The notes beneath the pieces are model-generated. The model ran no database searches. It saw only the letters and a program-made list of their open reading frames with translations, and was not told the origin of the DNA. 64,000 nt of DNA, from NCBI GenBank assembly GCA_002269645.1, contig NIVC01000302.1:130303-194302 (forward strand), read 5' to 3'. This DNA comes from Macrostomum lignano (Eukaryota). Each line of letters starts with the position of its first letter. Positions within the stretch are counted from its first letter, which is position 1. Shown piece by piece: positions 1 through 27,311 of the stretch. Position numbers and translations under genes: made by a program.

Positions 1-759
1 TCAAAGCATTAAGTATCGAGTGTACATTCACCTGCCTGCTGTTTATTCATTGAATTTCACTGCCCAGCTAATATACAGACAGGCTGCCTTTTGAAAGGCG
101 CCGATAGTAAAACCAATTGAATCTCGACACAGTCCTATCTATCTGTTTACAATGTACATTGCTATGTACACTCAGCCCAAACCAACCCTCCGTTCTGGAG
201 GGAAGCATTAAATTTAACTGAACCCCCCAACACGCGGGGGTTTTATTAACATTGAACCCAGAACACGCATCAACCACCCCTCCAATACACAGCGACCTGC
301 GGGGGGAGGTTGGGGTGGTTGTTTTTACAATAATGCCACTGGAGAGGCAAAGTGGCCAAAGAAGGTTAAGAAAACAGTTTTTTGCTTTTTTAACGGACTT
401 GACTTTTAATTTTTCAACATTAAAATAGCCTATTTGTTGCGTAGGAAAATTCTGAATTGATATATGTAAGTCCCGCATTTGAGTTGCCAGCCGTCTAGGA
501 AGAGATACGCGTTAAACCCGGCCGGTCGATCGACCCACTCAGCTTTAGATATAACGAGGCCAACTCCTCCGTTGGCGGAGTGAGGGGATAGAACTCCCAT
601 CGCCAGAATTTCATTCCCCGAAACCATCAGCTGAATCCAATGACACGAATCCCATCGTCCAAATCCTCTCCAAATCCTATATTAACCTCCCAAAAACCAT
701 GTTGTTTTACCTGTGTGCAAAAATTGACTGCCTGCCATCGTCCAGACTGAGACTCTCGT

Positions 760-2290
760 CTGTCTCCTCTCTCCTCTTTGCTCTCTCATCTCTAATCTCT
801 CCTATCTCCTCTCTGCTCTCTCATCTCTAATCTCTCCTATCTCCTCTCTGCTCTCATCTCCTCGCTTATCTATCATTTCTCATGTCTACTCTCTTATCTC
901 TCCTCACTACTTTCTCCTCTCAACTTTTTCCTCTCTCCTCTTTTATCTCTTCTCTCTCCTCTCCTTTATCTCCTCTCTGCTCTCTCATCTCTCTACTTTC
1001 TCCCCTCTCCTCTCTCCCTTATCCTCTTGCTTCTCTCTCCTCTCTCTCCCCTCATCTCTACTAATTTATCTCTTCTCTCTCGTCTTTTGGCTCTACTCCC
1101 TCTGTCTCCTCTTTCTCCTCTCTTACCCCTCTCCTCTCTCCTCTCAATTCCTTCATCTCTTCTCTCGCCTTTATTCTCTTTTTTTCTTTTCTCTAATCTG
1201 TCCCTTTTAATTCTTTTAATTCAATTTAACCATTTCATCCTCTCCATGAAACAGCTATCATCAAAATCCTCTCCGTTAAACTGCAATCTAGCTTGTATCA
1301 TCCTCCTTCAAGCTACAATCCATCGATTTAAAAAAATACTATCTCTATCAAATTTCAGTCAATCAAGACTATGAAACTGAAGTCTATAAAAATATGATTT
1401 TTACTTGTCTGGGTATACGTCAAAAAATCTTCCAAATCTTCCAAATCCTCCATAAAACCTCTGAAATATCATAGCATGTTTTCCCTGTTTACAAAAATTG
1501 ACTGCCATCGTCCAGACTGAGACTCTCTCCTGTCGCCTCTCTCCTCTTTGCTCCTTTATCTAATCTCTTCTTTCTACTTCCTGCTCTCCATCTCCTCTCT
1601 CATCTCTACTCTTACTTTCTTATCAATCACCTCCCATCTCTCATCTCTCCCTCTACGCTCTCATCTCTATTTTCTCATCTCTATTCTCTCATCTTTCCCC
1701 TTTTGCTCTCTCATTTGTTTTTTCATCTCTCTCTTCTCTCCCTTCTCTTCTCGCTTCGCTCTCTCCCCTCTTCTCTCTATCTCTTCTCTCCTGTCTTCTC
1801 TCAATTCTCTCTATCTCTCCTCTTCTCTCTCATCTCTCATCTCTACTCGCTTATCTATCGCCTCTCCTCTACCCTGTCCTCTCTCTCTCCTCTTTTTTCT
1901 CTCTCGTCTCTCCTCTCTGCTCTCAATTCTCATACTCCTTTTTTCTCTCTTACCCTCTCCCTCTTCATCTCTCATCTTTCCCCTCTTCTCTCTACCGTCT
2001 CCTGTCTCATCTCTCCTCTCTCTTCTCTCTCCTCTGTACTATCTTATCCCTCCTCTCTCCTCCCATCTTTCCTCCCTCCTTTGCTCTCTCATTTTCCTCT
2101 CTCCCCTCCTTTCTTCCCTCTACTTTCTCTTCTCTTCGCTCTCCCTCTTCATCATTCCCGCCTCACTCCCCTCTTCTCTCCCCTCTGGCTCTGTCGTCTT
2201 TAATCTCTTATCTCTCATATCTACTGTCTTTCTATCATCTTTCTATCCTCTCTTCTCCTTGAAATCTCTCTTCTCTTTACTCTCTTATCT
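760..2290 (+). repeat. CT-rich polypyrimidine low-complexity tracts (representative copy; repeated in most array units)
   Basis: Near-pure C/T stretches of about 0.5-0.8 kb, each preceded by the motif AAAATTGACTGCC..GTCCAGACTGAGACTCTC. Confidence 0.95.
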
Positions 2291-3385
2291 GACGGACTGA
2301 AAGCGCCGATAATCAAACCAATTGAAATTTGTTACCCGCCTCCTCCATTACTGAATTTACTCAAATGATAGCTGGCCTGAATTTGTGTACTCAACCCCCC
2401 CCCCCCAACTACAATCTTGGCAGAAATTTTAAAAGTATGGAATCGTTTTTTCAATGCTGTGCTTTTTGTTTTCATATTTAAAGCAAATAACTTATATCCC
2501 CGAATTCAGCGTTGCAAGATCCTTCCAGCAGTATAAGTCTCTCCTCTCAAAGTTAAAAAAAAGGAACAGTTAACGTCTGAACTTCCCAGTTCAAAGCATT
2601 AAGTATCGAGTGTACATTCACCTGCCTGCTGTTTATTCATTGAATTTCACTGCCCAGCTAATATACAGACAGGCTGCCTTTTGAAAGGCGCCGATAGTAA
2701 AACCAATTGAATCTCGACACAGTCCTATCTATCTGTTTACAATGTACATTGCTATGTACACTCAGCCCAAACCAACCCTCCGTTCTGGAGGGAAGCATTA
2801 AATTTAACTGAACCCCCAACACGCGGGGTTTTATTAACATTGAACCCAGAACACGCATCAACCACCCCTCCAATACACAGCGACCTGCGGGGGGAGGTTG
2901 GGGTGGTTGTTTTTACAATAATGCCACTGGAGAGGCAAAGTGGCCAAAGAAGGTTAAGAAAACAGTTTTTTGCTTTTTTAACGGACTTGACTTTTAATTT
3001 TTCAACATTAAAATAGCCTATTTGTTGCGTAGGAAAATTCTGAATTGATATATGTAAGTCCCGCATTTGAGTTGCCAGCCGTCTAGGAAGAGATACGCGT
3101 TAAACCCGGCCGGTCGATCGACCCACTCAGCTTTAGATATAACGAGGCCAACTCCTCCGTTGGCGGAGTAAGGGGAAGAACTCCCATCGCCAGAATTTCA
3201 TTTTCTGAAATCCATCAGCTGAATCCAATGACACGAATCCCATCGTCCAAATCCTCTCCAAATCCTCTATTAACCCCCCAAAAATCATGTTGTTTTACCT
3301 GTTTGCAAAAATTGACTGCCTGCCATCATTCCTGCCTCACTCCCCTCTTCTCTCCCCTCTGTCGTCGACTCGTCTTTAATCTCAC

Positions 3386-3775
3386 TGTCGCGACTTTCCT
3401 AGTCATTTCTTTAGTTCACCTTCACTTGTCTCTGTTTACTCTGTTTTCTCTCTTCTCTGTCCAGCTCAATCTTGTTATTCTTATCTCTCTCTCCCTTGCT
3501 GCCTTCTGATTGGCTCTCCATTCTCGCCTCTCTCTTCAGTCGCGCACTCCACCCCCTCTCTTTATTATTCTAGGCTCAACCCCCCAAAGTTAAATGTTCT
3601 ATAAATATATCGGTTTGGGCCCTGCGCCCACTTACTGCTCCTTCAATTTAACTCCAATTAAATAGTTTTTAGTTTAGTTAGTATTTTTTCTACATGGCGC
3701 CCAATGTGGGGCTTATCTTAGATTCAATTTAACTCCAAGTAACTCTCTAGTCTTTAGTTTAGTATTTTTTCTACA
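3386..3775 (+). mobile_element. Miniature LTR element (LTR + PBS + partial second LTR end), copy 1
   Basis: TG...CA at 3386-3694. PBS TGGCGCCCAATGTGGGGC at 3695-3712 matches the complement of the tRNA-Lys(CUU) 3' end at 17/18. A second ..TTTTCTACA end is at 3775, and a 5-bp TSD CTCAC flanks both sides. Confidence 0.8.
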
Positions 3776-4232
3776 CTCACAGCTCTCATATCTACTGTCT
3801 TTTCCATTATCTTTCTATCCTCTCTTCTCCTTGAAATCTCTTCTCTCTACTCTCTTATCTGACGGACTGAAAGCGCCGATAATCAAACCAATTGAAATTT
3901 ATCACCCGCCTCCTCCATTACTGAAATTACTCAAATGATAGCTGGCTTGAATTTGTGTACGCAACCTTCCCCCCAACTACAATCTTGGCAGAAAGTTTAA
4001 AAGTATGGAAATCGTTTTTTCAATGCTGTGCTTTTTGTTTTCATTTAAAACAAATAACTTATATCCCCAAACTCAGCGTTGCAAGATCTTTCCAGCAATA
4101 CAAATTCTCTCCTCTCAAAGCTTAAAACTCAAGGAACAGTTAGCGTTTGAACTTCCCGATTTAAAGCATTGAAGTATCTATCGAGTGTACATTCACTGCC
4201 TGCTAGCTAGTAAGAGGCTCGCAAGTTTATTC

Positions 4233-4270
4233 CAGGGACTACTCAATTCTAGAGAATTGAGTAGTCCCTG
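4233..4270. mobile_element. 38-bp TIR-only hAT-like insertion, copy 1
   Basis: CAGGGACTACTCAATTCT-AG-AGAATTGAGTAGTCCCTG flanked by 8-bp TSD GTTTATTC; empty site at 24043-24050. Confidence 0.8.
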
Positions 4271-7200
4271 GTTTATTCATTGAATTTAGCTGCCCAGCTA
4301 AATACAGTCTTGAAAGACGCCGATAATAAAACCAATTGAATATCGACACAGTCCTTATCTATCTGTTTACACAGTACATTGCTATGTACACTCAGCCCAA
4401 ACCAACCCCCCTATTCCGGGGGAATCATTAAATTTTACTTCACCCCCAACACGCGGGGGTTTTATTAGCATTGAACCCAGAACACGCGTCACCCACCCCT
4501 CCAATACACAGCGACCCGCGGGAGGAGGTTGGGGTGGTTGTTTTTACAATTATGCCACTACCCCTCCACTGGAGAGGCAAAGTGGCCAAAGAAGGTTAAG
4601 AAAACAGTTTTCTGCTTTTTTAACTGACTTAATTTTGGAAATTTCAACATTAAAATAGCCTATTTGTTGCGTAGGAAAATTCTGCATTGATATATGTAAG
4701 TCCCGCATTTGAGTTGCCAGCCGTCTAGGAGGAGATACGCGTTAAACCCGGCCGGTCGATCGATCCACTCAGCTTTAGATATAAGACGAGGCCAACTCCT
4801 CCGTTGGCGGAGTGAGGGGATAGAACTCCCATCGCCAGAATTTCATTCCCCGAAACCATCAGCTGAATCCAATGACACGAATCCCATCGTCCAAATCCTC
4901 TCCAAATCCTATATTAACCTCCCAAAAACCATGTTGTTTTACCTGTGTGCAAAAATTGACTGCCTGCCATCGTCCAGACTGAGACTCTCGTCTGTCTCCT
5001 CTCTCCTCTTTGCTCTCTCATCTCTAATCTCTCCTATCTCCTCTCTGCTCTCTCATCTCTAATCTCTCCTATCTCCTCTCTGCTCTCATCTCCTCGCTTA
5101 TCTATCATTTCTCATGTCTACTCTCTTATCTCTCCTCACTACTTTCTCCTCTCAACTTTTTCCTCTCTCCTCTTTTATCTCTTCTCTCTCCTCTCCTTTA
5201 TCTCCTCTCTGCTCTCTCATCTCTCTACTTTCTCCCCTCTCCTCTCTCCCTTATCCTCTTGCTTCTCTCTCCTCTCTCTCCCCTCATCTCTACTAATTTA
5301 TCTCTTCTCTCTCGTCTTTTGGCTCTACTCCCTCTGTCTCCTCTTTCTCCTCTCTTACCCCTCTCCTCTCTCCTCTCAATTCCTTCATCTCTTCTCTCGC
5401 CTTTATTCTCTTTTTTCTTTTCTCTAATCTGTCCCTTTTAATTCTCTCTTTTCATGTTCTCTTTCATCTAATCTTTTATCTACTCTAGCCTTTTCTCTTT
5501 TCTCTATTCCCTTTCAATTTAACCATTTCATCCTCTCCATGAAACAGCTATCATCAAAATCCTCTCCGTTAAACTGCAATCTAGCTTGTATCATCCTCCT
5601 TCAAGCTACAATCCATCGATTTAAAAAAATACTATCTCTATCAAATTTCAGTCAATCAAGACTATGAAACTGAAGTCTATAAAAATATGATTTTTACTTG
5701 TCTGGGTATACGTCAAAAAATCTTCCAAATCTTCCAAATCCTCCATAAAACCTCTGAAATATCATAGCATGTTTTCCCTGTTTACAAAAATTGACTGCCA
5801 TCGTCCAGACTGAGACTCTCTCCTGTCGCCTCTCTCCTCTTTGCTCCTTTATCTAATCTCTTCTTTCTGCTTCCTGCTCTCCATCTCCTCTCTCATCTCT
5901 ACTCTTACTTTCTTATCAATCACCTCCCATCTCTCATCTCTCCCCTCTACGCTCTCATCTCTATTTTCTCATCTCTATTCTCTCATCTTTCCCCTTTTGC
6001 TCTCTCATTTGTTTTTTCATCTCTCTCTTCTCTCCCTTCTCTTCTCGCTTCGCTCTCTCCCCTCTTCTCTCTATCTCTTCTCTCCTGTCTTCTCTCAATT
6101 CTCTCTATCTCTCCTCTTCTCTCTCATCTCTCATCTCTACTCGCTTATCTATCGCCTCTCCTCTACCCTGTCCTCTCTCTCTCCTCTTTTTTCTCTCTCG
6201 TATCTCCTCTCTGCTCTCAATTCTCATACTCCTATTTTCTCTCTTACCCTCTCCCTCTTCATCTCTCATCTTTCCCCTCTTCTCTCTACCGTCTCCTGTC
6301 TCATCTCTCCTCTCTCTTCTCTCTCCTCTGTACTATCTTATCCCTCCTCTCTCCTCCCATCTTTCCTCCCTCCTTTGCTCTCTCATTTTCCTCTCTCCCC
6401 TCCTTTCTTCCCTCTACTTTCTCTTCTCTTCGCTCTCCCTCTTCATCATTCCCGCCTCACTCCCCTCTTCTCTCCCCTCTGGCTCTGTCGTCTTTAATCT
6501 CTTATCTCTCATATCTACTGTCTTTCTATCATCTTTCTATCCTCTCTTCTCCTTGAAATCTCTCTTCTCTTTACTCTCTTATCTGACGGACTGAAAGCGC
6601 CGATAATCAAACCAATTGAAATTTGTTACCAGCCTCCTCCATTACTGAATTTACTCAAATGATAGCTGGCCTGAATTTGTGTACTCAACCCCCCCCAACT
6701 ACAATCTTGGCAGAAATTTTAAAAGTATGGAATCGTTTTTTCAATGCTGTGCTTTTTGTTTTCATATTTAAAGCAAATAACTTAAATCCCCGAATTCAGC
6801 GTTGCAAGATCCTTCCAGCAATATAAGTCTCTCCTCTCAAAGTTAAAAAAAAGGAACAGTTAACGTCTGAACTTCCCGGTTCAAAGCATTAAGTATCGAG
6901 TGTACATTCACCTGCCTGCTGTTTATTCATTGAATTTCACTGCCCAGCTAATATACAGACAGGCTGCCTTTTGAAAGGCGCCGATAGTAAAACCAATTGA
7001 ATCTCGACACAGTCCTATCTATCTGTTTACAATGTACATTGCTATGTACACTCAGCCCAAACCAACCCTCCGTTCTGGAGGGAAGCATTAAATTTAACTG
7101 AACCCCCAACACGCGGGGGTTTTATTAGCATTGAACCCAGAACACGCATCAACCACCCCTCCAATACACAGCGACCTGCGGGGGAGGTTGGGGTGGTTGT

Positions 7201-10200
7201 TTTTACAATAATGCCACTGGAGAGGCAAAGTGGCCAAAGAAGGTTAAGAAAACAGTTTTTTGCTTTTTTAACGGACTTGACTTTTAATTTTTCAACATTA
7301 AAATAGCCTATTTGTTGCGTAGGAAAATTTTGAATTGATATATGTAAGTCCCGCATTTGAGTTGCCAGCCGTCTAGGAGGAGATACGCGTTAAACCCGGC
7401 CGGTCGATCGACCCACTCGACCTTAGCTTTAGATATAAGACGAGGCCAACTCCTCCGTTGGCGGAGTGAGGGGATAGAACTCCCATCGCCAGAATTTCAT
7501 TCCCCGAAACCATCAGCTGAATCCAATGACACGAATCCCATCGTCCAAATCCTCTCCAAATCCTATATTAACCTCCCAAAAACCATGTTGTTTTACCTGT
7601 GTGCAAAAATTGACTGCCTGCCATTGTCCAGATTGAGACTCTCGTCTGTCCCTCTCTCCTCTTTGCTCTCTCATCTCTAATCTCTCCTATCTCCTCTCTG
7701 CTCTCATCTGCTCGTTTATCAATCATTTCTCATCTCATCTCTTATCTCTCATCTCTACTCTCTTATCTCTCCTTTCTGCACTCTCATATCTAGACTCTCT
7801 TCTTTCTCCTCACCACTTTCTCCTCTACTTTTTCCTCTCTTCTCTTTTATCTCTTCACTCTCCTCTCCTTTATCTCCTCTCTGCTCTCTCATCTTTCTAC
7901 TTTCTCCCCTCTCCTCTCTCCCTTATCCTCTCGCTTCTCTCTCCCCTCATCTTTACTCATTTATCTCTTCTCTCTCGTCTTTTGGCTCTACTCCCTCCTG
8001 TCTCCTCTTTCTCCTCTCTTACCCCCTCTCCTCTCTCCTCTCAATTCCCCCATCTCTTCTCTCGCCTTTATTCTCTTTTTCTTTTCTCTAATCTGCCCTT
8101 TTGATTCTCTCTTTTCATGTTCTCTTTCCTCTAATATTTTATTCACTCTTTCCTTTCTCTTTTCTCTATTCCCTTTCATTTAGCCATTTCATCCTCTCTA
8201 TGAAACAGATATCATCAAAATCATCTCCGTTAAATGCAATCTCCTTCAAGTGTATCATCTCCTTCAAGCTACAATCCATCATTTAAAAAAATATTATCTC
8301 TATCAAATTTCAGTCACTCAAGACTATGAAACTGAAGTCTATAAAATATGCTTTTTACTTGTCTGGATATACGTCAAAAAAATTAAAAAAATCCTCCATA
8401 AAACCTCTGAAATATCATAGCATGTTTTCCCTGTTTGCAAAAATTAATCTCTCCTATCTCCTCTCTGCTCTCTCATCTCTAATCTCTCCTATCTCCTCTC
8501 TGCTCTCATCTCCTCGCTTATCTATCATTTCTCATGTCTACTCTCTTATCTCTCCTCACTACTTTCTCCTCTCAACTTTTTCCTCTCTCCTCTTTTATCT
8601 CTTCTCTCTCCTCTCCTTTATCTCCTCTCTGCTCTCTCATCTCTCTACTTTCTCCCCTCTCCTCTCTCCCTTATCCTCTTGCTTCTCTCTCCTCTCTCTC
8701 CCCTCATCTCTACTAATTTATCTCTTCTCTCTCGTCTTTTGGCTCTACTCCCTCTGTCTCCTCTTTCTCCTCTCTTACCCCTCTCCTCTCTCCTCTCAAT
8801 TCCTTCATCTCTTCTCTCGCCTTTATTCTCTTTTTTTCTTTTCTCTAATCTGTCCCTTTTAATTCTTTTAATTCAATTTAACCATTTCATCCTCTCCATG
8901 AAACAGCTATCATCAAAATCCTCTCCGTTAAACTGCAATCTAGCTTGTATCATCCTCCTTCAAGCTACAATCCATCGATTTAAAAAAATACTATCTCTAT
9001 CAAATTTCAGTCAATCAAGACTATGAAACTGAAGTCTATAAAAATATGATTTTTACTTGTCTGGGTATACGTCAAAAAATCTTCCAAATCTTCCAAATCC
9101 TCCATAAAACCTCTGAAATATCATAGCATGTTTTCCCTGTTTACAAAAATTGACTGCCATCGTCCAGACTGAGACTCTCTCCTGTCGCCTCTCTCCTCTT
9201 TGCTCCTTTATCTAATCTCTTCTTTCTGCTTCCTGCTCTCCATCTCCTCTCTCATCTCTACTCTTACTTTCTTATCAATCACCTCCCATCTCTCATCTCT
9301 CCCCTCTACGCTCTCATCTCTATTTTCTCATCTCTATTCTCTCATCTTTCCCCTTTTGCTCTCTCATTTGTTTTTTCATCTCTCTCTTCTCTCCCTTCTC
9401 TTCTCGCTTCGCTCTCTCCCCTCTTCTCTCTATCTCTTCTCTCCTGTCTTCTCTCAATTCTCTCTATCTCTCCTCTTCTCTCTCATCTCTCATCTCTACT
9501 CGCTTATCTATCGCCTCTCCTCTACCCTGTCCTCTCTCTCTCCTCTTTTTTCTCTCTCGTATCTCCTCTCTGCTCTCAATTCTCATACTCCTATTTTCTC
9601 TCTTACCCTCTCCCTCTTCATCTCTCATCTTTCCCCTCTTCTCTCTACCGTCTCCTGTCTCATCTCTCCTCTCTCTTCTCTCTCCTCTGTACTATCTTAT
9701 CCCTCCTCTCTCCTCCCATCTTTCCTCCCTCCTTTGCTCTCTCATTTTCCTCTCTCCCCTCCTTTCTTCCCTCTACTTTCTCTTCTCTTCGCTCTCCCTC
9801 TTCATCATTCCCGCCTCACTCCCCTCTTCTCTCCCCTCTGGCTCTGTCGTCTTTAATCTCTTATCTCTCATATCTACTGTCTTTCTATCATCTTTCTATC
9901 CTCTCTTCTCCTTGAAATCTCTCTTCTCTTTACTCTCTTATCTGACGGACTGAAAGCGCCGATAATCAAACCAATTGAAATTTGTTACCAGCCTCCTCCA
10001 TTACTGAATTTACTCAAATGATAGCTGGCCTGAATTTGTGTACTCAACCCCCCCCAACTACAATCTTGGCAGAAATTTTAAAAGTATGGAATCGTTTTTT
10101 CAATGCTGTGCTTTTTGTTTTCATATTTAAAGCAAATAACTTAAATCCCCGAATTCAGCGTTGCAAGATCCTTCCAGCAATATAAGTCTCTCCTCTCAAA

Positions 10201-13200: not shown

Positions 13201-16200
13201 GCTCTGTCGTCTTTAATCTCTTATCTCTCATATCTACTGTCTTTCTATCATCTTTCTATCCTCTCTTCTCCTTGAAATCTCTCTTCTCTTTACTCTCTTA
13301 TCTGACGGACTGAAAGCGCCGATAATCAAACCAATTGAAATTTGTTACCAGCCTCCTCCATTACTGAATTTACTCAAATGATAGCTGGCCTGAATTTGTG
13401 TACTCAACCCCCCCCAACTACAATCTTGGCAGAAATTTTAAAAGTATGGAATCGTTTTTTCAATGCTGTGCTTTTTGTTTTCATATTTAAAGCAAATAAC
13501 TTAAATCCCCGAATTCAGCGTTGCAAGATCCTTCCAGCAATATAAGTCTCTCCTCTCAAAGTTAAAAAAAAGGAACAGTTAACGTCTGAACTTCCCGGTT
13601 CAAAGCATTAAGTATCGAGTGTACATTCACCTGCCTGCTGTTTATTCATTGAATTTCACTGCCCAGCTAATATACAGACAGGCTGCCTTTTGAAAGGCGC
13701 CGATAGTAAAACCAATTGAATCTCGACACAGTCCTATCTATCTGTTTACAATGTACATTGCTATGTACACTCAGCCCAAACCAACCCTCCGTTCTGGAGG
13801 GAAGCATTAAATTTAACTGAACCCCCCAACACGCGGGGTTTTATTAGCATTGAACCCAGAACACGCATCAACCACCCCTCCAATACACAGCGACCTGCGG
13901 GGGGAGGTTGGGGTGGTTGTTTTTACAATAATGCCACTGGAGAGGCAAAGTGGCCAAAGAAGGTTAAGAAAACAGTTTTTTGCTTTTTTAACGGACTTGA
14001 CTTTTAATTTTTCAACATTAAAATAGCCTATTTGTTGCGTAGGAAAATTTTGAATTGATATATGTAAGTCCCGCATTTGAGTTGCCAGCCGTCTAGGAGG
14101 AGATACGCGTTAAACCCGGCCGGTCGATCGACCCACTCGACCTTAGCTTTAGATATAAGACGAGGCCAACTCCTCCGTTGGCGGAGTGAGGGGATAGAAC
14201 TCCCATCGCCAGAATTTCATTCCCCGAAACCATCAGCTGAATCCAATGACACGAATCCCATCGTCCAAATCCTCTCCAAATCCTATATTAACCTCCCAAA
14301 AACCATGTTGTTTTACCTGTGTGCAAAAATTGACTGCCTGCCATTGTCCAGATTGAGACTCTCGTCTGTCCCTCTCTCCTCTTTGCTCTCTCATCTCTAA
14401 TCTCTCCTATCTCCTCTCTGCTCTCATCTGCTCGTTTATCAATCATTTCTCATCTCATCTCTTATCTCTCATCTCTACTCTCTTATCTCTCCTTTCTGCA
14501 CTCTCATATCTAGACTCTCTTCTTTCTCCTCACCACTTTCTCCTCTACTTTTTCCTCTCTTCTCTTTTATCTCTTCACTCTCCTCTCCTTTATCTCCTCT
14601 CTGCTCTCTCATCTTTCTACTTTCTCCCTCTCCTCTCTCCCTTATCCTCTCGCTTCTCTCTCCCCTCATCTTTACTCATTTATCTCTTCTCTCTCGTCTT
14701 TTGGCTCTACTCCCTCCTGTCTCCTCTTTCTCCTCTCTTACCCCCTCTCCTCTCTCCTCTCAATTCCCCCATCTCTTCTCTCGCCTTTATTCTCTTTTTC
14801 TTTTCTCTAATCTGCCCTTTTGATTCTCTCTTTTCATGTTCTCTTTCCTCTAATATTTTATTCACTCTTTCCTTTCTCTTTTCTCTATTCCCTTTCATTT
14901 AGCCATTTCATCCTCTCTATGAAACAGATATCATCAAAATCATCTCCGTTAAATGCAATCTCCTTCAAGTGTATCATCTCCTTCAAGCTACAATCCATCA
15001 TTTAAAAAAATATTATCTCTATCAAATTTCAGTCACTCAAGACTATGAAACTGAAGTCTATAAAATATGCTTTTTACTTGTCTGGATATACGTCAAAAAA
15101 ATTAAAAAAATCCTCCATAAAACCTCTGAAATATCATAGCATGTTTTCCCTGTTTGCAAAAATTAATCTCTCCTATCTCCTCTCTGCTCTCTCATCTCTA
15201 ATCTCTCCTATCTCCTCTCTGCTCTCATCTCCTCGCTTATCTATCATTTCTCATGTCTACTCTCTTATCTCTCCTCACTACTTTCTCCTCTCAACTTTTT
15301 CCTCTCTCCTCTTTTATCTCTTCTCTCTCCTCTCCTTTATCTCCTCTCTGCTCTCTCATCTCTCTACTTTCTCCCCTCTCCTCTCTCCCTTATCCTCTTG
15401 CTTCTCTCTCCTCTCTCTCCCCTCATCTCTACTAATTTATCTCTTCTCTCTCGTCTTTTGGCTCTACTCCCTCTGTCTCCTCTTTCTCCTCTCTTACCCC
15501 TCTCCTCTCTCCTCTCAATTCCTTCATCTCTTCTCTCGCCTTTATTCTCTTTTTTTCTTTTCTCTAATCTGTCCCTTTTAATTCTTTTAATTCAATTTAA
15601 CCATTTCATCCTCTCCATGAAACAGCTATCATCAAAATCCTCTCCGTTAAACTGCAATCTAGCTTGTATCATCCTCCTTCAAGCTACAATCCATCGATTT
15701 AAAAAAATACTATCTCTATCAAATTTCAGTCAATCAAGACTATGAAACTGAAGTCTATAAAAATATGATTTTTACTTGTCTGGGTATACGTCAAAAAATC
15801 TTCCAAATCTTCCAAATCCTCCATAAAACCTCTGAAATATCATAGCATGTTTTCCCTGTTTACAAAAATTGACTGCCATCGTCCAGACTGAGACTCTCTC
15901 CTGTCGCCTCTCTCCTCTTTGCTCCTTTATCTAATCTCTTCTTTCTACTTCCTGCTCTCCCTCTACGCTCTCATCTCTACTCTTACTTTCTTATCAATCA
16001 CCTCCCATCTCTCATCTCTCCCCTCTACGCTCTCATCTCTATTTTCTCATCTCTATTCTCTCATCTTTCCCCTTTTGCTCTCTCATTTGTTTTTTCATCT
16101 CTCTCTTCTCTCCCTTCTCTTCTCGCTTCGCTCTCTCCCCTCTTCTCTCTATCTCTTCTCTCCTGTCTTCTCTCAATTCTCTCTATCTCTCCTCTTCTCT

Positions 16201-17759
16201 CTCATCTCTCATCTCTACTCGCTTATCTATCGCCTCTCCTCTACCCTGTCCTCTCTCTCTCCTCTTTTTTCTCTCTCGTCTCTCCTCTCTGCTCTCAATT
16301 CTCATACTCCTTTTTTCTCTCTTACCCTCTCCCTCTTCATCTCTCATCTTTCCCCTCTTCTCTCTACCGTCTCCTGTCTCATCTCTCCTCTCTCTTCTCT
16401 CTCCTCTGTACTATCTTATCCCTCCTCTCTCCTCCCATCTTTCCTCCCTCCTTTGCTCTCTCATTTTCCTCTCTCCCCTCCTTTCTTCCCTCTACTTTCT
16501 CTTCTCTTCGCTCTCCCTCTTCATCATTCCCGCCTCACTCCCCTCTTCTCTCCCCTCTGGCTCTGTCGTCTTTAATCTCTTATCTCTCATATCTACTGTC
16601 TTTCTATCATCTTTCTATCCTCTCTTCTCCTTGAAATCTCTCTTCTCTTTACTCTCTTATCTGACGGACTGAAAGCGCCGATAATCAAACCAATTGAAAT
16701 TTGTTACCCGCCTCCTCCATTACTGAATTTACTCAAATGATAGCTGGCCTGAATTTGTGTACTCAACCCCCCCCCCCCAACTACAATCTTGGCAGAAATT
16801 TTAAAAGTATGGAATCGTTTTTTCAATGCTGTGCTTTTTGTTTTCATATTTAAAGCAAATAACTTATATCCCCGAATTCAGCGTTGCAAGATCCTTCCAG
16901 CAGTATAAGTCTCTCCTCTCAAAGTTAAAAAAAAGGAACAGTTAACGTCTGAACTTCCCAGTTCAAAGCATTAAGTATCGAGTGTACATTCACCTTCCTG
17001 CTGTTTATTCATTGAATTTCACTGCCCAGCTAATATACAGACAGGCTGCCTTTTGAAAGGCGCCGATAGTAAAACCAATTGAATCTCGACACAGTCCTAT
17101 CTATCTGTTTACAATGTACATTGCTATGTACACTCAGCCCAAACCAACCCTCCGTTCTGGAGGGAAGCATTAAATTTAACTGAACCCCCCAACACGCGGG
17201 GGTTTTATTAACATTGAACCCAGAACACGCATCAACCACCCCTCCAATACACAGCGACCTGCGGGGGGAGGTTGGGGTGGTTGTTTTTACAATAATGCCA
17301 CTGGAGAGGCAAAGTGGCCAAAGAAGGTTAAGAAAACAGTTTTTTGCTTTTTTAACGGACTTGACTTTTAATTTTTCAACATTAAAATAGCCTATTTGTT
17401 GCGTAGGAAAATTCTGAATTGATATATGTAAGTCCCGCATTTGAGTTGCCAGCCGTCTAGGAGGAGATACGCGTTAAACCCGGCCGGTCGATCGACCCAC
17501 TCAGCTTTAGATATAACGAGGCCAACTCCTCCGTTGGCGGAGTAAGGGGAAGAACTCCCATCGCCAGAATTTCATTTTCTGAAATCCATCAGCTGAATCC
17601 AATGACACGAATCCCATCGTCCAAATCCTCTCCAAATCCTCTATTAACCCCCCAAAAATCATGTTGTTTTACCTGTTTGCAAAAATTGACTGCCTGCCAT
17701 CATTCCTGCCTCACTCCCCTCTTCTCTCCCCTCTGTCGTCGACTCGTCTTTAATCTCAC

Positions 17760-18148
17760 TGTCGCGACTTTCCTAGTCATTTCTTTAGTTCACCTTCACT
17801 TGTCTCTGTTTACTCTGTTTTCTCTCTTCTCTGTCCAGCTCAATCTTGTTATTCTTATCTCTCTCTCCCTTGCTGCCTTCTGATTGGCTCTCCATTCTCG
17901 CCTCTCTCTTCAGTCGCGCACTCCACCCCCTCTCTTTATTATTCTAGGCTCAACCCCCAAAGTTAAATGTTCTATAAATATATCGGTTTGGGCCCTGCGC
18001 CCACTTACTGCTCCTTCAATTTAACTCCAATTAAATAGTTTTTAGTTTAGTTAGTATTTTTTCTACATGGCGCCCAATGTGGGGCTTATCTTAGATTCAA
18101 TTTAACTCCAAGTAACTCTCTAGTCTTTAGTTTAGTATTTTTTCTACA
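17760..18148 (+). mobile_element. Miniature LTR element, copy 2
   Basis: Same structure as copy 1, PBS at 18068, TSD CTCAC. Confidence 0.8.
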
Positions 18149-18605
18149 CTCACAGCTCTCATATCTACTGTCTTTTCCATTATCTTTCTATCCTCTCTTC
18201 TCCTTGAAATCTCTTCTCTCTACTCTCTTATCTGACGGACTGAAAGCGCCGATAATCAAACCAATTGAAATTTATCACCCGCCTCCTCCATTACTGAAAT
18301 TACTCAAATGATAGCTGGCTTGAATTTGTGTACGCAACCTTCCCCCCAACTACAATCTTGGCAGAAAGTTTAAAAGTATGGAAATCGTTTTTTCAATGCT
18401 GTGCTTTTTGTTTTCATTTAAAACAAATAACTTATATCCCCAAACTCAGCGTTGCAAGATCTTTCCAGCAATACAAATTCTCTCCTCTCAAAGCTTAAAA
18501 CTCAAGGAACAGTTAGCGTTTGAACTTCCCGATTTAAAGCATTGAAGTATCTATCGAGTGTACATTCACTGCCTGCTAGCTAGTAAGAGGCTCGCAAGTT
18601 TATTC

Positions 18606-18643
18606 CAGGGACTACTCAATTCTAGAGAATTGAGTAGTCCCTG
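18606..18643. mobile_element. 38-bp TIR-only hAT-like insertion, copy 2
   Basis: Same palindrome and GTTTATTC TSD. Confidence 0.8.
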
Positions 18644-20859
18644 GTTTATTCATTGAATTTAGCTGCCCAGCTAAATACAGTCTTGAAAGACGCCGATAAT
18701 AAAACCAATTGAATATCGACACAGTCCTTATCTATCTGTTTACACAGTACATTGCTATGTACACTCAGCCCAAACCAACCCCCCTATTCCGGGGGAATCA
18801 TTAAATTTTACTTCACCCCCAACACGCGGGGTTTTATTAGCATTGAACCCAGAACACGCGTCACCCACCCCTCCAATACACAGCGACCCGCGGGAGGAGG
18901 TTGGGGTGGTTGTTTTTACAATTATGCCACTACCCCTCCACTGGAGAGGCAAAGTGGCCAAAGAAGGTTAAGAAAACAGTTTTCTGCTTTTTTAACTGAC
19001 TTAATTTTGGAAATTTCAACATTAAAATAGCCTATTTGTTGCGTAGGAAAATTCTGCATTGATATATGTAAGTCCCGCATTTGAGTTGCCAGCCGTCTAG
19101 GAGGAGATACGCGTTAAACCCGGCCGGTCGATCGATCCACTCAGCTTTAGATATAAGACGAGGCCAACTCCTCCGTTGGCGGAGTAAGGGGAAGAACTCC
19201 CATCGCCAGAATTTCATTTTCTGAAATCCATCAGCTGAATCCAATGACACGAATCCCATCGTCCAAATCCTCTCCAAATCCTCTATTAACCCCCCAAAAA
19301 TCATGTTGTTTTACCTGTTTGCAAAAATTGACTGCCTGCCATTGTCCAGATTGAGACTCTCGTCTGTCCCTCTCTCCTCTTTGCTCTCTCATCTCTAATC
19401 TCTCCTATCTCCTCTCTGCTCTCATCTGCTCGTTTATCAATCATTTCTCATCTCATCTCTTATCTCTCATCTCTACTCTCTTATCTCTCCTTTCTGCACT
19501 CTCATATCTAGACTCTCTTCTTTCTCCTCACCACTTTCTCCTCTACTTTTTCCTCTCTTCTCTTTTATCTCTTCACTCTCCTCTCCTTTATCTCCTCTCT
19601 GCTCTCTCATCTTTCTACTTTCTCCCCTCTCCTCTCTCCCTTATCCTCTCGCTTCTCTCTCCCCTCATCTTTACTCATTTATCTCTTCTCTCTCGTCTTT
19701 TGGCTCTACTCCCTCCTGTCTCCTCTTTCTCCTCTCTTACCCCTCTCCTCTCTCCTCTCAATTCCCCCATCTCTTCTCTCGCCTTTATTCTCTTTTTCTT
19801 TTCTCTAATCTGCCCTTTTGATTCTCTCTTTTCATGTTCTCTTTCCTCTAATATTTTATTCACTCTTTCCTTTCTCTTTTCTCTATTCCCTTTCATTTAG
19901 CCATTTCATCCTCTCTATGAAACAGATATCATCAAAATCATCTCCGTTAAATGCAATCTCCTTCAAGTGTATCATCTCCTTCAAGCTACAATCCATCATT
20001 TAAAAAAATATTATCTCTATCAAATTTCAGTCACTCAAGACTATGAAACTGAAGTCTATAAAATATGCTTTTTACTTGTCTGGATATACGTCAAAAAATT
20101 AAAAAAATCCTCCATAAAACCTCTGAAATATCATAGCATGTTTTCCCTGTTTGCAAAAATTGACTGCCAGGTCCAGACTGAGACTCTCTCCTGTCTCCTC
20201 TCTCCTCTTTGCTCCTTTATCTAATCTCTTCTCTCTGCTCTCATCTCCTCTCTCCTCTCTACTCTTACTTTCTTATCAATCACCTCCCATCTCTCATCTC
20301 TCCTCTCTGCGCTCTTATCTCTTTTTTCTTATCTCTATTCTCTCATCTTTTCCCTTTGCTCTCTCATTTCTTTTCTCATCTCTCTCCTGAGTCCTCTCTC
20401 TCTTCTCTTCTCGCTTCTCTCTCTCCCGTCTTCTCTCCTGTCTTCTCTCAATTGTCTCTTATCTCTCTTCTTCTCTCCCATCTCTCATCTCTACTCGCTT
20501 ATCTATCGCCTCTCCTCTACCCTGCCCTCTCTCTCTCTCTTCTCTTTTCTCTCTCGTCTCTTCTCTCTGCTCTCATTTCTCATACTCCTATTTTCTCTCT
20601 TACCCTCTCCTTTTTCATCTCTCATCTTTCCCCTCTCCTCTCTACCGTCTCCTGTCTCATCTCTCTTCTCTCTTCTCTCTCCTCTGTACTCTCTTATCCC
20701 TCTCTCCTCCCATCTTTCCTCCCTCCTTTGCTCTCTCATTTTTCCTCTCTCCCCTCCTTTCTTCCCTCTACATTCTCTTCTCTTCGCTCTCCCTCTTCAT
20801 CATTCCTGCCTCACTCCCCTCTTCTCTCCCCTCTGTCGTCGACTCGTCTTTAATCTCAC

Positions 20860-21249
20860 TGTCGCGACTTTCCTAGTCATTTCTTTAGTTCACCTTCACT
20901 TGTCTCTGTTTACTCTGTTTTCTCTCTTCTCTGTCCAGCTCAATCTTGTTATTCTTATCTCTCTCTCCCTTGCTGCCTTCTGATTGGCTCTCCATTCTCG
21001 CCTCTCTCTTCAGTCGCGCACTCCACCCCCTCTCTTTATTATTCTAGGCTCAACCCCCCAAAGTTAAATGTTCTATAAATATATCGGTTTGGGCCCTGCG
21101 CCCACTTACTGCTCCTTCAATTTAACTCCAATTAAATAGTTTTTAGTTTAGTTAGTATTTTTTCTACATGGCGCCCAATGTGGGGCTTATCTTAGATTCA
21201 ATTTAACTCCAAGTAACTCTCTAGTCTTTAGTTTAGTATTTTTTCTACA
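20860..21249 (+). mobile_element. Miniature LTR element, copy 3
   Basis: Same structure as copy 1, PBS at 21169, TSD CTCAC. Confidence 0.8.
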
Positions 21250-21706
21250 CTCACAGCTCTCATATCTACTGTCTTTTCCATTATCTTTCTATCCTCTCTT
21301 CTCCTTGAAATCTCTTCTCTCTACTCTCTTATCTGACGGACTGAAAGCGCCGATAATCAAACCAATTGAAATTTATCACCCGCCTCCTCCATTACTGAAA
21401 TTACTCAAATGATAGCTGGCTTGAATTTGTGTACGCAACCTTCCCCCCAACTACAATCTTGGCAGAAAGTTTAAAAGTATGGAAATCGTTTTTTCAATGC
21501 TGTGCTTTTTGTTTTCATTTAAAACAAATAACTTATATCCCCAAACTCAGCGTTGCAAGATCTTTCCAGCAATACAAATTCTCTCCTCTCAAAGCTTAAA
21601 ACTCAAGGAACAGTTAGCGTTTGAACTTCCCGATTTAAAGCATTGAAGTATCTATCGAGTGTACATTCACTGCCTGCTAGCTAGTAAGAGGCTCGCAAGT
21701 TTATTC

Positions 21707-21744
21707 CAGGGACTACTCAATTCTAGAGAATTGAGTAGTCCCTG
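21707..21744. mobile_element. 38-bp TIR-only hAT-like insertion, copy 3
   Basis: Same palindrome and GTTTATTC TSD. Confidence 0.8.
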
Positions 21745-24644
21745 GTTTATTCATTGAATTTAGCTGCCCAGCTAAATACAGTCTTGAAAGACGCCGATAA
21801 TAAAACCAATTGAATATCGACACAGTCCTTATCTATCTGTTTACACAGTACATTGCTATGTACACTCAGCCCAAACCAACCCCCCTATTCCGGGGGAATC
21901 ATTAAATTTTACTTCACCCCCAACACGCGGGGGTTTTATTAGCATTGAACCCAGAACACGCGTCACCCACCCCTCCAATACACAGCGACCCGCGGGAGGA
22001 GGTTGGGGTGGTTGTTTTTACAATTATGCCACTACCCCTCCACTGGAGAGGCAAAGTGGCCAAAGAAGGTTAAGAAAACAGTTTTCTGCTTTTTTAACTG
22101 ACTTAATTTTGGAAATTTCAACATTAAAATAGCCTATTTGTTGCGTAGGAAAATTCTGCATTGATATATGTAAGTCCCGCATTTGAGTTGCCAGCCGTCT
22201 AGGAGGAGATACGCGTTAAACCCGGCCGGTCGATCGATCCACTCAGCTTTAGATATAAGAGAAGACGAGGCCAACTCCTCCGTTGGCGGAGTAAGGGGAT
22301 AGAACTCCCATCGCCAGAATTTCATTCCCTGAAATCCATCAGCTAAATCCAATGACACGAATCCCATCGTCCAAATCCTCTCCAAATCCTCTATTAACCT
22401 CCCAAAAACCATGTTGTTTTACCTGTTAGCAAAAATTGACTGCCTGCCATTGTCCAGACTGAGACTCTCGTCTGTCCCTCTCTCCTCTTTGCTCTCTCAT
22501 CTCTAATCTCTCCTATCTCCTCTCTGCTCTCATCTGCTCGTTTATCAATCATTTCTCATCTCATCTCTCATCTCTCATCTCTACTCTCTTATCTCTCCTT
22601 TCTGCGCTCTCATATCTACTCTCTTCTTTCTCCTCACTACTTTCTCCTCTCTACTTTTTCCTCTCTCCTCTTTTATCTCTTCTCTCTCCTCTCCTTTATC
22701 TCCTCTCTGCTCTCTCATCTCTCCACTTTCTCCCCTCTCCTTTCTCCCTTATCCTCTCGCTTCTCTCTCCTCTCTCTCCCCTCATCTCTACTCATTTATC
22801 TCTTCTCTCTCGTCTTTTGGCTCTACTCCCTCCTGTCTCCTCTTTCTCCTCTCTTACCCCTTCTCCTCTCTCCTCTCAATTCCCTCATCTCTTCTCTCGC
22901 CTTTATTCTCTTTTTCTTTTCTTTAATTTGTCCCTTTTGATTCTCTCTTTTCATGTTCTCTTTCATCTAATTATTTATCTACTCTTTCCTTTTCTCTTTT
23001 CTCTATTCCCTTTCATTTAGCCATTTCATCCTCTCCATGAAACAGATATCATCAAAATCATTTTCGTTAAATGCAATCCAGCGTGTATCATCTCCTTCAA
23101 GCTACAATCCATCAATTTAAAAAATATTATCTCTATCAAATTTCAGTCACTCAAGACTATGAAACTGAAGTCTATAAAAATATGCTTTTTACTTGTCTAG
23201 GTATACGTCAAAAAATTTAAAAAATCCTCCATAAAACCTCTGATATATCATAGCATGTTTTCCCTGTTTGCAAAAATTGACTGCCATCGTCCAGACTGAG
23301 ACTCTCTCCTGTCTCCTCTCTCCTCTTTGCTCCTTTATCTAATCTCTTCTCTCTGCTCTCATCTTCTCTCTCCTCTCTACTCTTACTTTCTTATCAATCA
23401 CCTCCTATCTCTCATCTCTCCTCTCTGCGCTCTCTATTTTCTCATCTCTATTCTCTCATCTTTCCCCTCTCCTCTCTACCGTCTCCTGTCTCATCTCTCC
23501 TCTCTCTTCTATCTCCTCTGTACTCTCTTATCCCTCCTCTCTCCTCCCATCTTTCCTCCCTCCTTTGCTCTCTCATTTTCCTCTCCCCTCCTTTCTTCCC
23601 TCTACATTCTCTTCTCTTCACTTTCCCTCTTCATCATTCCTGCCTCACTCCCCTCTTCTCTCCCCTCTTTCGTCGACGGACTGAAAGCACCGATATAATT
23701 AAACCAATTGAAATTTGTCACCCGCCTCCTCCATTACTGAAATTACTCAAATGACAGCTGGCTTGAATTTCTGTACGCAGCCCCCCCTCCAAGTACAATC
23801 TTGGCAGAAAGTTTAAAAGTATGGAAATCGTTTTTTCAATGCTGTGCTTTTTGTTTTCATATTTAAAGCAAATAACTTATATCCCCAAACTCAGCGTTGC
23901 AAGATCTTTCCAGCAATATAAATTCTCTCCTCTCAAAGCTTAAAACTCGAGGAACAGTTAGCGTTTAAACTTCCCGATTTAAAGCATTGAAGTATCTATC
24001 GAGTGTACATTCACTGCCTGCTAGCTAGTAAGAGGCTCGCAAGTTTATTCATTGAATTAGCTGCCCAGCTAAATACACAGTCTTGAAAGACGCCGATAAT
24101 AAAACCAATTGAATCTCGACACAGTCCTTATCTATCTGTTTACACAGTACATTGCTATGTACACTCAGCCCAAACCAACCCCCCCTATTCCGGGCCGGGG
24201 GGAATCATTAAATTTTACTTCACCCCCAACACGCGGGGGTTTTATTAGCATTGAACCCAGAACACGCGTCACCCACCCCTCCAAAACACAGCGACCCGCG
24301 GGAGGAGGTTGGGGTGGTTGTTTTTACAATTATGCCACTACCCCTCCACTGGAGAGGCAAAGTGGCCAAAGAAGGTTAAGAAAACAGTTTTCTGCTTTTT
24401 TAACTGACTTAATTTTGGAAATTTCAACATTAAAATAGCCTATTTGTTGCGTAGGAAAATTCTGGATTGATATATATAAGTCCCGCATTTGAGTTGCCAG
24501 CCGTCTAGGAGGAGATACGCGTTAAACCCGGCCGGTCGATCGATCCACTCAGCTTTAGATATAAGATACCCTGGTACTAATGACAGTAGCATGTATGATT
24601 TATTGGCATCTTTTTACGCAATTTCGCGTAATTTTCTTATCCAG

Positions 24645-24825
24645 CGAATTTCACCGTCGCAAAGAGAAGCACTGGCGCAAGGACGCGATTAAAGCATTGA
24701 AATTTGTTCAGGTTGCTAAGCAACGGGGCTGGCGTCTGCCCGGCTCCGGCTGCGATAATAATAATGGCGATGATGGCGGAGACTGGTATATGGACTTCTC
24801 TGGCGGCGAATATATTGAAGAGCCG
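24645..24825 (+). CDS. NVL: NVL-like AAA ATPase, first visible exon (N-terminal domain)
   Basis: TTTTCTTATCCAG acceptor and GTGAGT donor. EFHRRKEKHWRKDAIKALKFV resembles the NVL N-terminal basic helix and joins the next exon in phase 0. Confidence 0.6.
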
Positions 24826-25208
24826 GTGAGTTCTTAACGACGAAATTCCAAGTGCAGAGCTGTTAAGTTAAGCAGGGTTGATCGCGGTTAGTACGCGGAT
24901 TACTTAACTTTATGCTGTGATAGTTAAAGATGTCTTACTAGCCTGTAGCGTCTAGTTCTACTTCTTGCGGTTCATGCGGTTAAATTTTTCGATGCAAAAA
25001 TTAGACTTTCTCACGAATCTATTCGAGTCAAAAGGTTCTTTTTTCTAATGCGCTGGTTGACCCATTCTGTTGATTAGTTTTACCGATTTCACTCCGAAAA
25101 TTTTGCCTATGAGATCTACCTGGAGATGTAGGACTGGGAAAATCATATGGCTACCCCATCGCAATAGCTTTGGTGCCCTTGGAGAAGCGCTCTGGAAACG
25201 GCGCCAGT

Positions 25209-25752
25209 GGGATAGCGATGGCGCTCTTGGGGATAGCGATGGCGCTCTTGGGGATAGCGATAGCGCTCTTGGGGATAGCGATGGCGCTCTTGGGGATAGC
25301 GATGGCGCTCTTGGGGATAGCGATGGCGCTCTTGTGGACAGCGATGGTGCCATTGGTATATCGATGGCGCCCCTGGGATTGCGATGGCACCCCTGGGATA
25401 GTGATGGCGCCCTTGGTTTAGCGATGGCGTCCTTAGGATAGCGATGGCGCCCTTAGGATAGCGATGGCGCCCTTAGGATAGCGATGGCGCCCTTAGGATA
25501 GCGATGGCGCCCTTAGGATAGCGATGGCGCCCCTGGGATTGCGATGGCACCCCTGGGATAGTGATGGCGCCCTTGGTTTAGCGATGGTGCTCTTGGGGAT
25601 AGCGATAGCGCCCTTAGGATAGCGATGGCGCCCTTAGGATAGCGATGGCGCCCTTAGGATAGCGATGGCACCCCTGGGATAGCGATGGCACCCCTGGGAT
25701 AGCGATGGCGCCCCTGGGATAGCGATGGCGCCCCTGGGATAGCGATGGCATC
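25209..25752. repeat. 20-21 bp minisatellite (GGATAGCGATGGCGCCCTTA)n in NVL intron
   Basis: Direct tandem copies. Confidence 0.95.
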
Positions 25753-26050
25753 TCTGGTGCAGACACCTGTGGTCGACGTGCTGGTGAAATTTTGAGGCTT
25801 AGCAAGGCCGCACTGAGGCGCAGTGCTGATTGGTGCACGCTGCACAGGGGTGCATTGAGTACACTGGCGCTTTTGGGGAAAATTCGACCCTCTGGCAGAA
25901 TTGTTGAATATCTAGACGGTCCGAAGGGCTGGCGACTAAGCTGAGGGGAGATCCCCCCCCCCCTGGTTTGGTATTCCTACTGTGTTTTAAAGCTGATGAT
26001 TAAGCGGAAGAAATTAAAGAACAAATCTTTTTTTCTGCTGTTTTCCTCAG

Positions 26051-26413
26051 GACTACCGCAGCAGTCTCAACGAAGCCAGTCTGCGCAGAATTCGCGAAAC
26101 CGCAGCAGCCGCCTCCGGCAATCACGCCACGCCGACTTCGATAGCAACTACCGGCGATGAACACGACGATTTGGAGCCGGTGGACAACGGCGACGACATC
26201 GCGTCATCGTCGGCTACACCGCTGCCTCCTCCGTCGAAGCGTCGGCGTCGTCTGCGCAAATCCGACGAGCCAGCAGGAGCGGCGGCGGCGGTTGCGTCAG
26301 TTGAACGGAGAAGCCTGGCCACTCGGCTGGTGGACGAGATGGAGCTGGAATTTAGCGTGCCGCAGTTGAATTCGGAGGCGCTGTTCAAGGACCTGTTCCA
26401 CGAGGAGCTGATG
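26051..26413 (+). CDS. NVL: NVL exon (low-complexity linker with NLS-like PSKRRRR)
   Basis: TTTTCCTCAG acceptor, open frame DYRSSLNEASL...EELM, ending at a G|GCAAGT donor just before an in-frame stop. Confidence 0.7.
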
Positions 26414-26559
26414 GCAAGTTCTTAGCGCTGGGGCTGCGTCGATGATTGGGCGATTACTAATTATCAGACCTTCCCTAATCTTATCGGTTTAGATGTTAGA
26501 AATCTTCCTTAAGCTGCTCCAGTCTAGAAGTTAACCCTTACTATCCATAGAAATCTTCT

Positions 26560-26980: not shown

Positions 26981-27115
26981 ATCGCGCATCAGCTATAAAA
27001 TAGTCGCAGAAATGGTGCCTCAACCACCCCAAAAGGCCAGAATTAGTCTTCCAACAACTCTTCTTTTAAACACCTAGCTTAAGTTCACCTCCGCCACCTC
27101 ATTGCTCACCCGCAG

Positions 27116-27244: not shown

Positions 27245-27311
27245 GTAAGTCTTTCAAAAAATCGTCTTATGATTGTGTTTTCTATTGTGGCATAGATCTT
27301 CCATCAATTGC

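Follow-up and report, generated by a model that had tools for sequence, protein, structure and literature searches.

Canonical Helitrons (HLE1 elements) begin with a 5′ TC, insert between A and T, carry a hairpin roughly 10–12 nt before a 3′ CTRR end, and have neither terminal inverted repeats (TIRs) nor target-site duplications. The Lep1 Helitrons are, in addition, associated with purine-rich simple repeats. Tandem arrays of Helitrons have been documented in plants and bats (PMC5876387). In this study, we analyzed a 64,000-nt stretch of the genome of the flatworm Macrostomum lignano (assembly Mlig_3_7, GCA_002269645.1, NIVC00000000; PMC5730564), hereafter the window, which begins at nt 130303 of contig NIVC01000302.1 and opens with a head-to-tail array of repeat units on the minus strand (window 1–24,566). 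We interpret this array as a probable macrosatellite whose units derive from a non-autonomous Helitron of the canonical (HLE1) type.

Among the systems described so far, Helibat and HelibatN of Myotis, the plant arrays, and the circle junction of Helraiser resemble the M. lignano array in that, head to tail, a 3′ end is joined directly to a 5′ TC, the host flank is A, a palindrome lies 11–12 nt before the end, and TIRs are lacking (PMC5876387, PMC4778049). However, the flatworm units end in CTCG instead of CTAG and have a 5-bp stem in place of a 19-nt palindrome. They are also heterogeneous, falling into two clades and ranging from 1.6 to 3.4 kb, and four of their nine junctions are imprecise. 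A second point of comparison is Lep1 (LSCS3) of Lepidoptera and its horizontally transferred relatives, with which the units share a collinear 5′ core (PMC4038834). The M. lignano units differ from Lep1 in having GATC/CCGG palindromes where Lep1 has its TTTG microsatellite and in their unrelated 3′ end, and they are 10–20 times longer and arranged in tandem rather than dispersed.

The passage from a rolling-circle element to a tandem array with variable internal modules and unequal crossover is also illustrated by DINE-TR1/DINE-1 of Drosophila and by the Helentron repeats of Crassostrea gigas (PMC10048060). In those cases it is mainly short repeats inside HLE2 elements that expand, whereas in M. 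lignano a whole HLE1-type element is the repeat unit. The double-insertion model (McGurk and Barbash 2018, PMC5932611) provides a route to a first dimer that is then subject to unequal exchange, and it fits both the heterogeneity of the units and the filler found at one of their junctions, although the cases on which it was built are mainly those of other classes of element, in populations of Drosophila, and our data come from one assembly. With Helitron-to-satellite transitions or tandem Helitron arrays already described from Drosophila, oysters, bats and plants, the M. lignano array illustrates no new principle. The literature we searched contained no description of Helitrons, or of the array repeat, in M. 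lignano, and a string search of the literature with four motifs of the unit gave no match.

Results

Three roughly independent tests favor an HLE1-type origin of the units, namely the A|TC edge of the array, the placement of a hairpin near the unit end, and similarity to Lep1. The right edge of the array is sharp at 24,566, where the minus strand reads ...CAGGGTA|TCTTATATCTAAAGCTGAGTGGATCGATCGACCGGCCGGGTTTAACGCGTATCTC...AAATAGGCTATTTTAATG. Across this edge the sequence is ...CAGGGTA|TCTTATATCTAAAGCTGAG..., with a host A abutting the TC of the element, and so both the 5′ TC and the host-A flank of HLE1 elements are present at 24,567/24,566. By way of comparison, the trinucleotide ATC has a frequency of 0.005 on the array strand and of 0.013 on the minus strand of the window. 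The TC occurs at this genomic boundary (24,565–24,566) and at seven of the ten unit starts overall; the other three lack it. A preliminary description of the window, drawn up from its letters alone, had reported a clean A|TC right edge and quoted the start sequence, and both hold at these positions. It had also listed TIRs in dispersed copies among the signs that would speak against a Helitron; in the unit no TIRs were found when its first 20 nt, reverse-complemented, were compared with its last 150 nt (p = 0.09–0.95).

At the opposite end of the unit, the hairpin CTCCG-CCAA-CGGAG occurs once per unit (n = 9) and is followed in each case by GAGTTGGCCTCG. All complete units terminate in CTCCGCCAACGGAG-GAGTTGGC-CTCG, and their final 26 nt are the same. 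In U1, the unit next to the host edge, this 3′ end spans 22,266–22,291 on the minus strand and consists of the hairpin (22,278–22,291), then GAGTTGGC, then CTCG (22,266–22,269). The other eight hairpins, one per unit end and likewise on the minus strand, lie at 19,171–19,184, 17,529–17,542, 14,173–14,186, 10,814–10,827, 7,453–7,466, 4,799–4,812, 3,155–3,168 and 567–580. In nine of nine units the hairpin stops 12 nt before the presumed 3′ end, a distance made up of 8 nt plus CTCG; the earlier description had taken CTCG to follow those 12 nt when it is included in them. For comparison, the Helraiser palindrome lies 11 nt before its CTAG end (PMC4778049). Hairpins with a perfect stem of 5 bp or more, including 4 or more GC, number only 2–5 per unit, and the chance that one of them stops 6–15 nt before an arbitrary position is 0.5–1.2%.

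The left terminal sequence of U1 (24,427–24,566, minus strand) is a 140-nt module that begins every unit and has the layout TC-TATAT..AAAGCTGAG..(GATC/CCGG palindromes)..TTTAACGCGTATCTC..ATAGGCTATTTTA. As a Lep1 reference we used HaLep1_1 from the Helicoverpa Lep1 alignment in the supplement of PMC4038834, available as machine-read text, and all comparisons with Lep1 refer to that text. When HaLep1_1 and the 140-nt start of U2 are aligned globally, 87 of 158 columns are identical (z = 3.4 over shuffles, p = 0.0012–0.0014), and the alignment score is equaled by 0.4% of 3000 real 140-nt windows. The blocks common to both sequences are TC-TAT, AAAGCTGA, AACG.G..TA.TCTC and ATAGGCTAT.TTTA, and ATAGGCTAT begins at about nt 124 in both, such that the 5′ motifs of Lep1 (TC.., AAAGCTG, AACG.G..TCTC and ATAGGCTAT) recur in the unit in the same order. 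Under stringent local alignment only the ATAGGCTAT block is retrieved (p about 0.05), and for this reason we regard the similarity as remote and collinear, not close. The resemblance to Lep1 that the preliminary description had named is therefore significant and collinear, but remote and below family level in the text compared. A further resemblance, confined to the first 26 nt, is to a left end of the non-autonomous bat element HelibatN given in the Helraiser supplement (p = 0.0002–0.002, eight comparisons).

BLAST with a 300-nt query from the start of the element on the minus strand recovered ten unit starts, representing nine complete units and one truncated by the window edge. The array is at least 24.5 kb long and continues past the left edge of the window. 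Read from the host flank on the minus strand, it begins with U1 (22,266–24,566; 2301 bp), a clade A unit that is the most divergent of all. The CTCG end of U1 is separated by a 5-nt filler, TCTTC (22,261–22,265), from the TC start of U2 (19,159–22,260; 3102 bp), which is followed by U3 (17,517–19,158; 1642 bp), both of clade A. U4 (14,161–17,516; 3356 bp) belongs to clade B and starts with TTATATC, without the 5′ TC. U5 (10,802–14,160; 3359 bp) belongs to clade C, has three modules rich in GA, each about 750 bp long, as well as a 6-nt insertion in its 5′ motif, and is nearly matched by U6 (7,441–10,801; 3361 bp). U7 (4,787–7,440; 2654 bp) is a clade C unit with two GA-rich modules. Next come U8 (3,143–4,786; 1644 bp) and U9 (555–3,142; 2588 bp), the latter of clade B and again without the TC, and finally U10 (1–554), which comprises the 5′ 554 nt of a clade B unit that also lacks the TC. 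The head-to-tail array of 24.5 kb announced in the preliminary description is thus borne out, and so are units of kilobase size in tandem; these units are not uniform, however, since complete ones range from 1.64 to 3.36 kb and fall into two clades.

The internal junctions are of three types. Five of the nine read hairpin-GAGTTGGC-CTCG|TCTTATATC. In three others (unit starts 17,516, 3,142 and 554) the TC is gone and the junction reads CTCG|TTATATC, and in the remaining one the filler at 22,261–22,265 intervenes, giving CTCG-TCTTC-TCTTATATC. A T follows CTCG at all nine, the filler junction included. The claim that every internal junction is alike therefore holds for the hairpin and CTCG (nine of nine) and fails for the exact layout, which is found at five. 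Three units (starts 14,160, 10,801 and 7,440) have 6 nt inserted in the start motif, at its nt 17. Periodic junctions are uninformative by themselves, since the edge of any array sets a phase. Loss of TC and gain of TCTTC are two independent indels, and both fall exactly on the presumed boundary between the 3′ and 5′ ends of the element.

Each unit is composed of a mixed 5′ part of about 900 nt, a GA-rich middle, and a conserved final 180 nt. The middle consists of one to three purine-rich modules (up to 92% G+A), each roughly 750 bp, and the variation in unit length results mostly from the number of these modules, plus one internal deletion. The termini are conserved across units and the middles are variable, and an association with purine-rich repeats is a trait in common with Lep1. 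The units contain no Pfam-recognizable open reading frame (ORF), no Rfam family at gathering and E-value thresholds, and no tRNA detectable by a tRNA scan. A 136-amino-acid (aa) ORF and ten others within the units were rejected as spurious, since the protein collection does not contain them and neither homologs nor Pfam matches were found for them. The Rfam and tRNA scans also rule out a cluster of spliced-leader RNA, 5S or small nuclear RNA genes, as far as families known to Rfam are concerned. A large-period run of the tandem-repeat program TRF on single units returned nothing.

The relationships among the units record a history of rearrangement. Clade A comprises U1 together with U2, U3 and U8, and clade B/C comprises U4–U7, U9 and U10. 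Identity between the clades is 88–93% in the 5′ 500 nt and 95.5% in the 3′ 180 nt, compared with 98–100% within clades. U3 corresponds to U2 with 1.46 kb deleted from its interior (99.9% identity), U8 matches U3 at 99.9%, and the U3–U4 block recurs as U8–U9 with the same TC-less junction included. U5 and U6 differ at about 2 of 3361 positions (99.94% identical). Unequal exchange, together with internal deletion and the gain or loss of modules, accounts for the growth and reshuffling of the array; the block duplications and homogenized neighbors are direct evidence of unequal exchange and speak against a single one-step concatemer. The later unequal exchange proposed in the preliminary description is confirmed by these duplications, and the locus has the properties of a macrosatellite, being a long, head-to-tail, non-coding array shaped by such exchange.

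Every unit has another GC-rich hairpin at the same site, about nt 327–345, which reads ACCCCCGCGTGTTGGGGGT on the strand of the element (window 24,222–24,240 in U1) and lies a few hundred nucleotides past the Lep1-like core. It is pure speculation that this hairpin might be the relic of an ancestral terminator, bypassed at the time the long 3′ part was acquired.

Searches beyond the array were also made with unit ends and neighboring genes. The 3′ 24-mer had no match in metagenome and prokaryote collections. The 5′ 19-mer gave 16 and 6 matches in collections, which we attribute to chance because none extends past 23 nt. The neighboring NVL-like AAA ATPase, used as a query for a homeologous locus, retrieved no M. 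lignano protein in protein searches, and exact look-up of nine other ORFs of the window found the gypsy ORF alone on record.

To the right of the array, the flank (24,567–24,830, plus strand) is unique host sequence with no similarity to the unit. It may include a first exon (ATGGCGATGATGGCGGAG...) with a GTGAGT donor near 24,826, upstream of the exons of the NVL-like AAA ATPase. As this candidate exon would be transcribed away from the array, the array, about 200 bp distant, may be in a promoter region. Two host genes are recognizable further along, the NVL-like AAA ATPase (ORFs 28,368–31,046, plus strand) and Med20 (34,368–35,961, plus strand), neither of which has an M. lignano protein in the protein collection. 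Nine long minisatellite arrays of 0.2–1.7 kb each, with periods of 20, 26, 34, 24, 60, 23, 17, 31 and 40 nt, lie between or within the exons of these genes (25,200–38,291). The 24-nt minisatellite (28,979–29,647) is in frame within an ORF of 438 aa in the AAA ATPase region and is predicted to encode about 28 repeats of eight residues (VEGDSSKR-like); a Pfam match of this ORF to phage T4 Gp5_trimer_C is spurious and is produced by the minisatellite.

Retroelements lie further to the right. In a nested arrangement at 38,597–49,689, a DIRS-like element with a reverse transcriptase (39,322–40,851) and a tyrosine recombinase (40,872–41,714) adjoins a Ty3/gypsy element annotated at 43,772–47,869 (cluster BOX15_Mlig004214), whose 817-aa ORF (43,772–46,225) is recorded exactly on NIVC01000302.1. 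The contig sequence around this ORF is identical to window 40,772–49,225, on the same strand, and the cluster mates of the ORF bear BOX15_Mlig names from M. lignano. The gypsy element is accompanied by repeats resembling long terminal repeats (LTRs) at 42,137–43,435 and 48,111–49,689, each with a (ACTGAACCAT)n array of 57–68 copies. Positions 38,597–39,299 are a 100% duplicate of 47,409–48,111, and therefore represent a partial second gypsy copy upstream. A second LTR retroelement (49,440–63,439) has gag-pol ORFs at 57,637–61,512, several of them split into separate frames, and flanking repeats (49,440–50,377 and 62,508–63,439) that are 94.7% identical and each contain a (TAC)n tract exceeding 100 copies.

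Discussion

Although the edge, the hairpin placement and the left terminal sequence agree with a Helitron origin, a number of observations weigh against it. The 3′ tetranucleotide is CTCG in all complete units, and its C at the third position violates the CTRR consensus; the Helitron reading of the preliminary description is thus upheld by the A|TC boundary, the hairpin distance and the absence of TIRs, but not by the terminal motif. The stem is short, having 5 bp or, in one clade, 8 bp with a bulge, and the 3′ end folds with an unremarkable energy (z = −0.8 to −1.35), for which reason the argument from the hairpin is one of placement and not of stability. No sequence similarity was detected between the last 44 nt and the right ends of Lep1 and Helraiser (p = 0.87 and 0.59, respectively). 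Identity to Lep1, measured on the machine-read supplement text, is about 55% of columns, which is remote and falls short of family-level identity over the 134-bp core when compared with the 86% given for a beetle relative (PMC4038834). The three TC-less units are unable to transpose as they stand. Moreover, the right edge is the sole genomic boundary in the window, the far end and its 3′ flanking base lying beyond the left edge, before nt 130303 of NIVC01000302.1. The remaining 39 kb of the window (24,567–64,000) contain no copy of the unit, and neither a copy nor a Lep1-like motif chain occurs in 115 kb sampled at five further M. lignano loci (gypsy cluster members), in a sample outside the array that amounts to about 0.015% of the genome. 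Finally, no ORF of the size expected for Rep/Hel was seen in the window and no partner was identified, a subset of the long ORFs having been scanned against Pfam (with matches to reverse transcriptase, integrase-family, AAA and Med20 domains) and no scan for Helitron domains having been made.

Some of these difficulties have precedents. Helraiser bypasses its terminator and thereby generates de novo ends such as CTTG, CTAC and AATG (PMC4778049), and Lep1 combines a conserved 5′ core with acquired 3′ sequences that have little interspecific similarity (PMC4038834). The absence of 3′ similarity and the CTCG end fit these reports, yet a defining feature of Helitrons still fails in the M. lignano units.

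If the units were not derived from a transposon, the array could be an ordinary macrosatellite, in which a kilobase segment was tandemly duplicated and spread by unequal crossing-over, the Helitron-like ends being coincidental. Any edge would then set the unit start and leave the periodic junctions uninformative, and the dynamics are those typical of satellites, given that the edge unit U1 is the most divergent, neighbors are homogenized, and blocks are duplicated. The lack of copies in the sampled DNA outside the array (39 kb of the window plus 115 kb), the CTCG that departs from CTRR, and the ordinary hairpin energy agree with this account as well. However, it needs three roughly independent coincidences, the A|TC edge (0.5–1.3%), the hairpin placement (about 1%), and a Lep1 similarity that was predicted beforehand (p about 0.001), and both junction indels fall exactly on the presumed element boundary. 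We therefore consider such an origin unlikely. A different possibility is that the array is Helitron-derived but was made essentially in one step, by insertion of a single rolling-circle concatemer that afterwards accumulated point mutations only. The precise head-to-tail junctions at five of nine sites are what this would produce, Helraiser forms circles with a precise 3′–5′ junction and shows more read-through when its hairpin is weak or absent (PMC4778049), and concatemers are typical of rolling-circle replicons (PMC5876387). Nevertheless, equal divergence among units would be expected, and instead interleaved clades differ by 7–12% at the 5′ end and are 98–100% identical within; the unit lengths of 1.6 to 3.4 kb and the duplication of a two-unit block along with its mutated junction are equally at odds with a single step, which is already disfavored and in our judgment quite improbable.

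A different class of mobile element would be a still more doubtful source, whether a non-autonomous Helentron/HLE2 element of the DINE-1 kind or a tandemized LTR or other element. HLE2 elements often contain internal tandem repeats and have been sources of satellites in Drosophila and oysters (PMC10048060), and they too have a 3′ stem-loop, which by the definition of the group follows the right one of its TIRs (PMC11417382). Yet the 12–16 nt TIRs of HLE2 elements are absent from the units (p = 0.09–0.95) and the 5′ flank is A and not the T of their T–T insertion sites, which excludes the Helentron/HLE2 pattern. With regard to LTR elements, the unit starts with TC and lacks the TG...CA terminus, and no long terminal direct repeat was seen in self-comparisons of the unit, where the GA-rich modules are the only internal repeats and no separate test was made. 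Against any of these other classes stands the resemblance of the 5′ end to the HLE1-type ends of Lep1 and Helibat. Least probable of all is that the number and order of units are in part an artifact of long-read assembly in a repeat-rich, recently duplicated genome. Several units are 99.9–100% identical over kilobases, M. lignano is very repeat-rich, and one assembly was seen; but lengths and junction types interleave consistently and the array joins the unique flank cleanly. Such an artifact would not create the terminal features, and it would bear on the size of the array and not on the identity of its units. On balance, derivation of the units from a Helitron is the likely explanation.

On this explanation, each unit has a left end of about 140 nt that starts with TC and is remote kin to the core of the insect Helitron Lep1, a non-coding cargo of 1.5–3.2 kb with one to three GA-rich modules, and a right end built de novo from a short GC hairpin, 8 nt and CTCG. 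Judging from the biology of other Helitrons (PMC4778049, PMC5876387), a RepHel transposase acting in trans would nick at A|TC, unwinding would proceed 5′ to 3′ and pause at the hairpin, and the strand would be cut after the terminal tetranucleotide CTCG. The released strand would then circularize with a precise 3′–5′ junction and integrate between A and T. The first tandem pair could have arisen by read-through, or by continued rolling-circle copying, past the weak, non-canonical terminator. Both are plausible, since poor termination is to be expected of a short hairpin with a non-canonical end. An equally good source would be a second insertion exactly at the end of a resident copy (PMC5932611), and a rolling-circle origin of the first tandem is one that we only infer.

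A bolder possibility, unlikely on present evidence, is that the array is a record of terminator failure. A lineage related to Lep1, so far known from insects and their parasites, would have been present in a free-living flatworm, where a weak 3′ end formed de novo (5-bp hairpin, CTCG) repeatedly gave head-to-tail multimers in vivo and seeded a macrosatellite near the 5′ end of a gene.

The M. lignano array extends the known cases to a flatworm model organism, with a clear example that involves a whole element, and it combines a short hairpin with a CTCG end that is non-canonical. If its left end is remotely related to Lep1, this would widen the known host range of such left terminal sequences. 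For M. lignano genomics, the array represents a repeat family that is at risk of being misclassified as a plain satellite.

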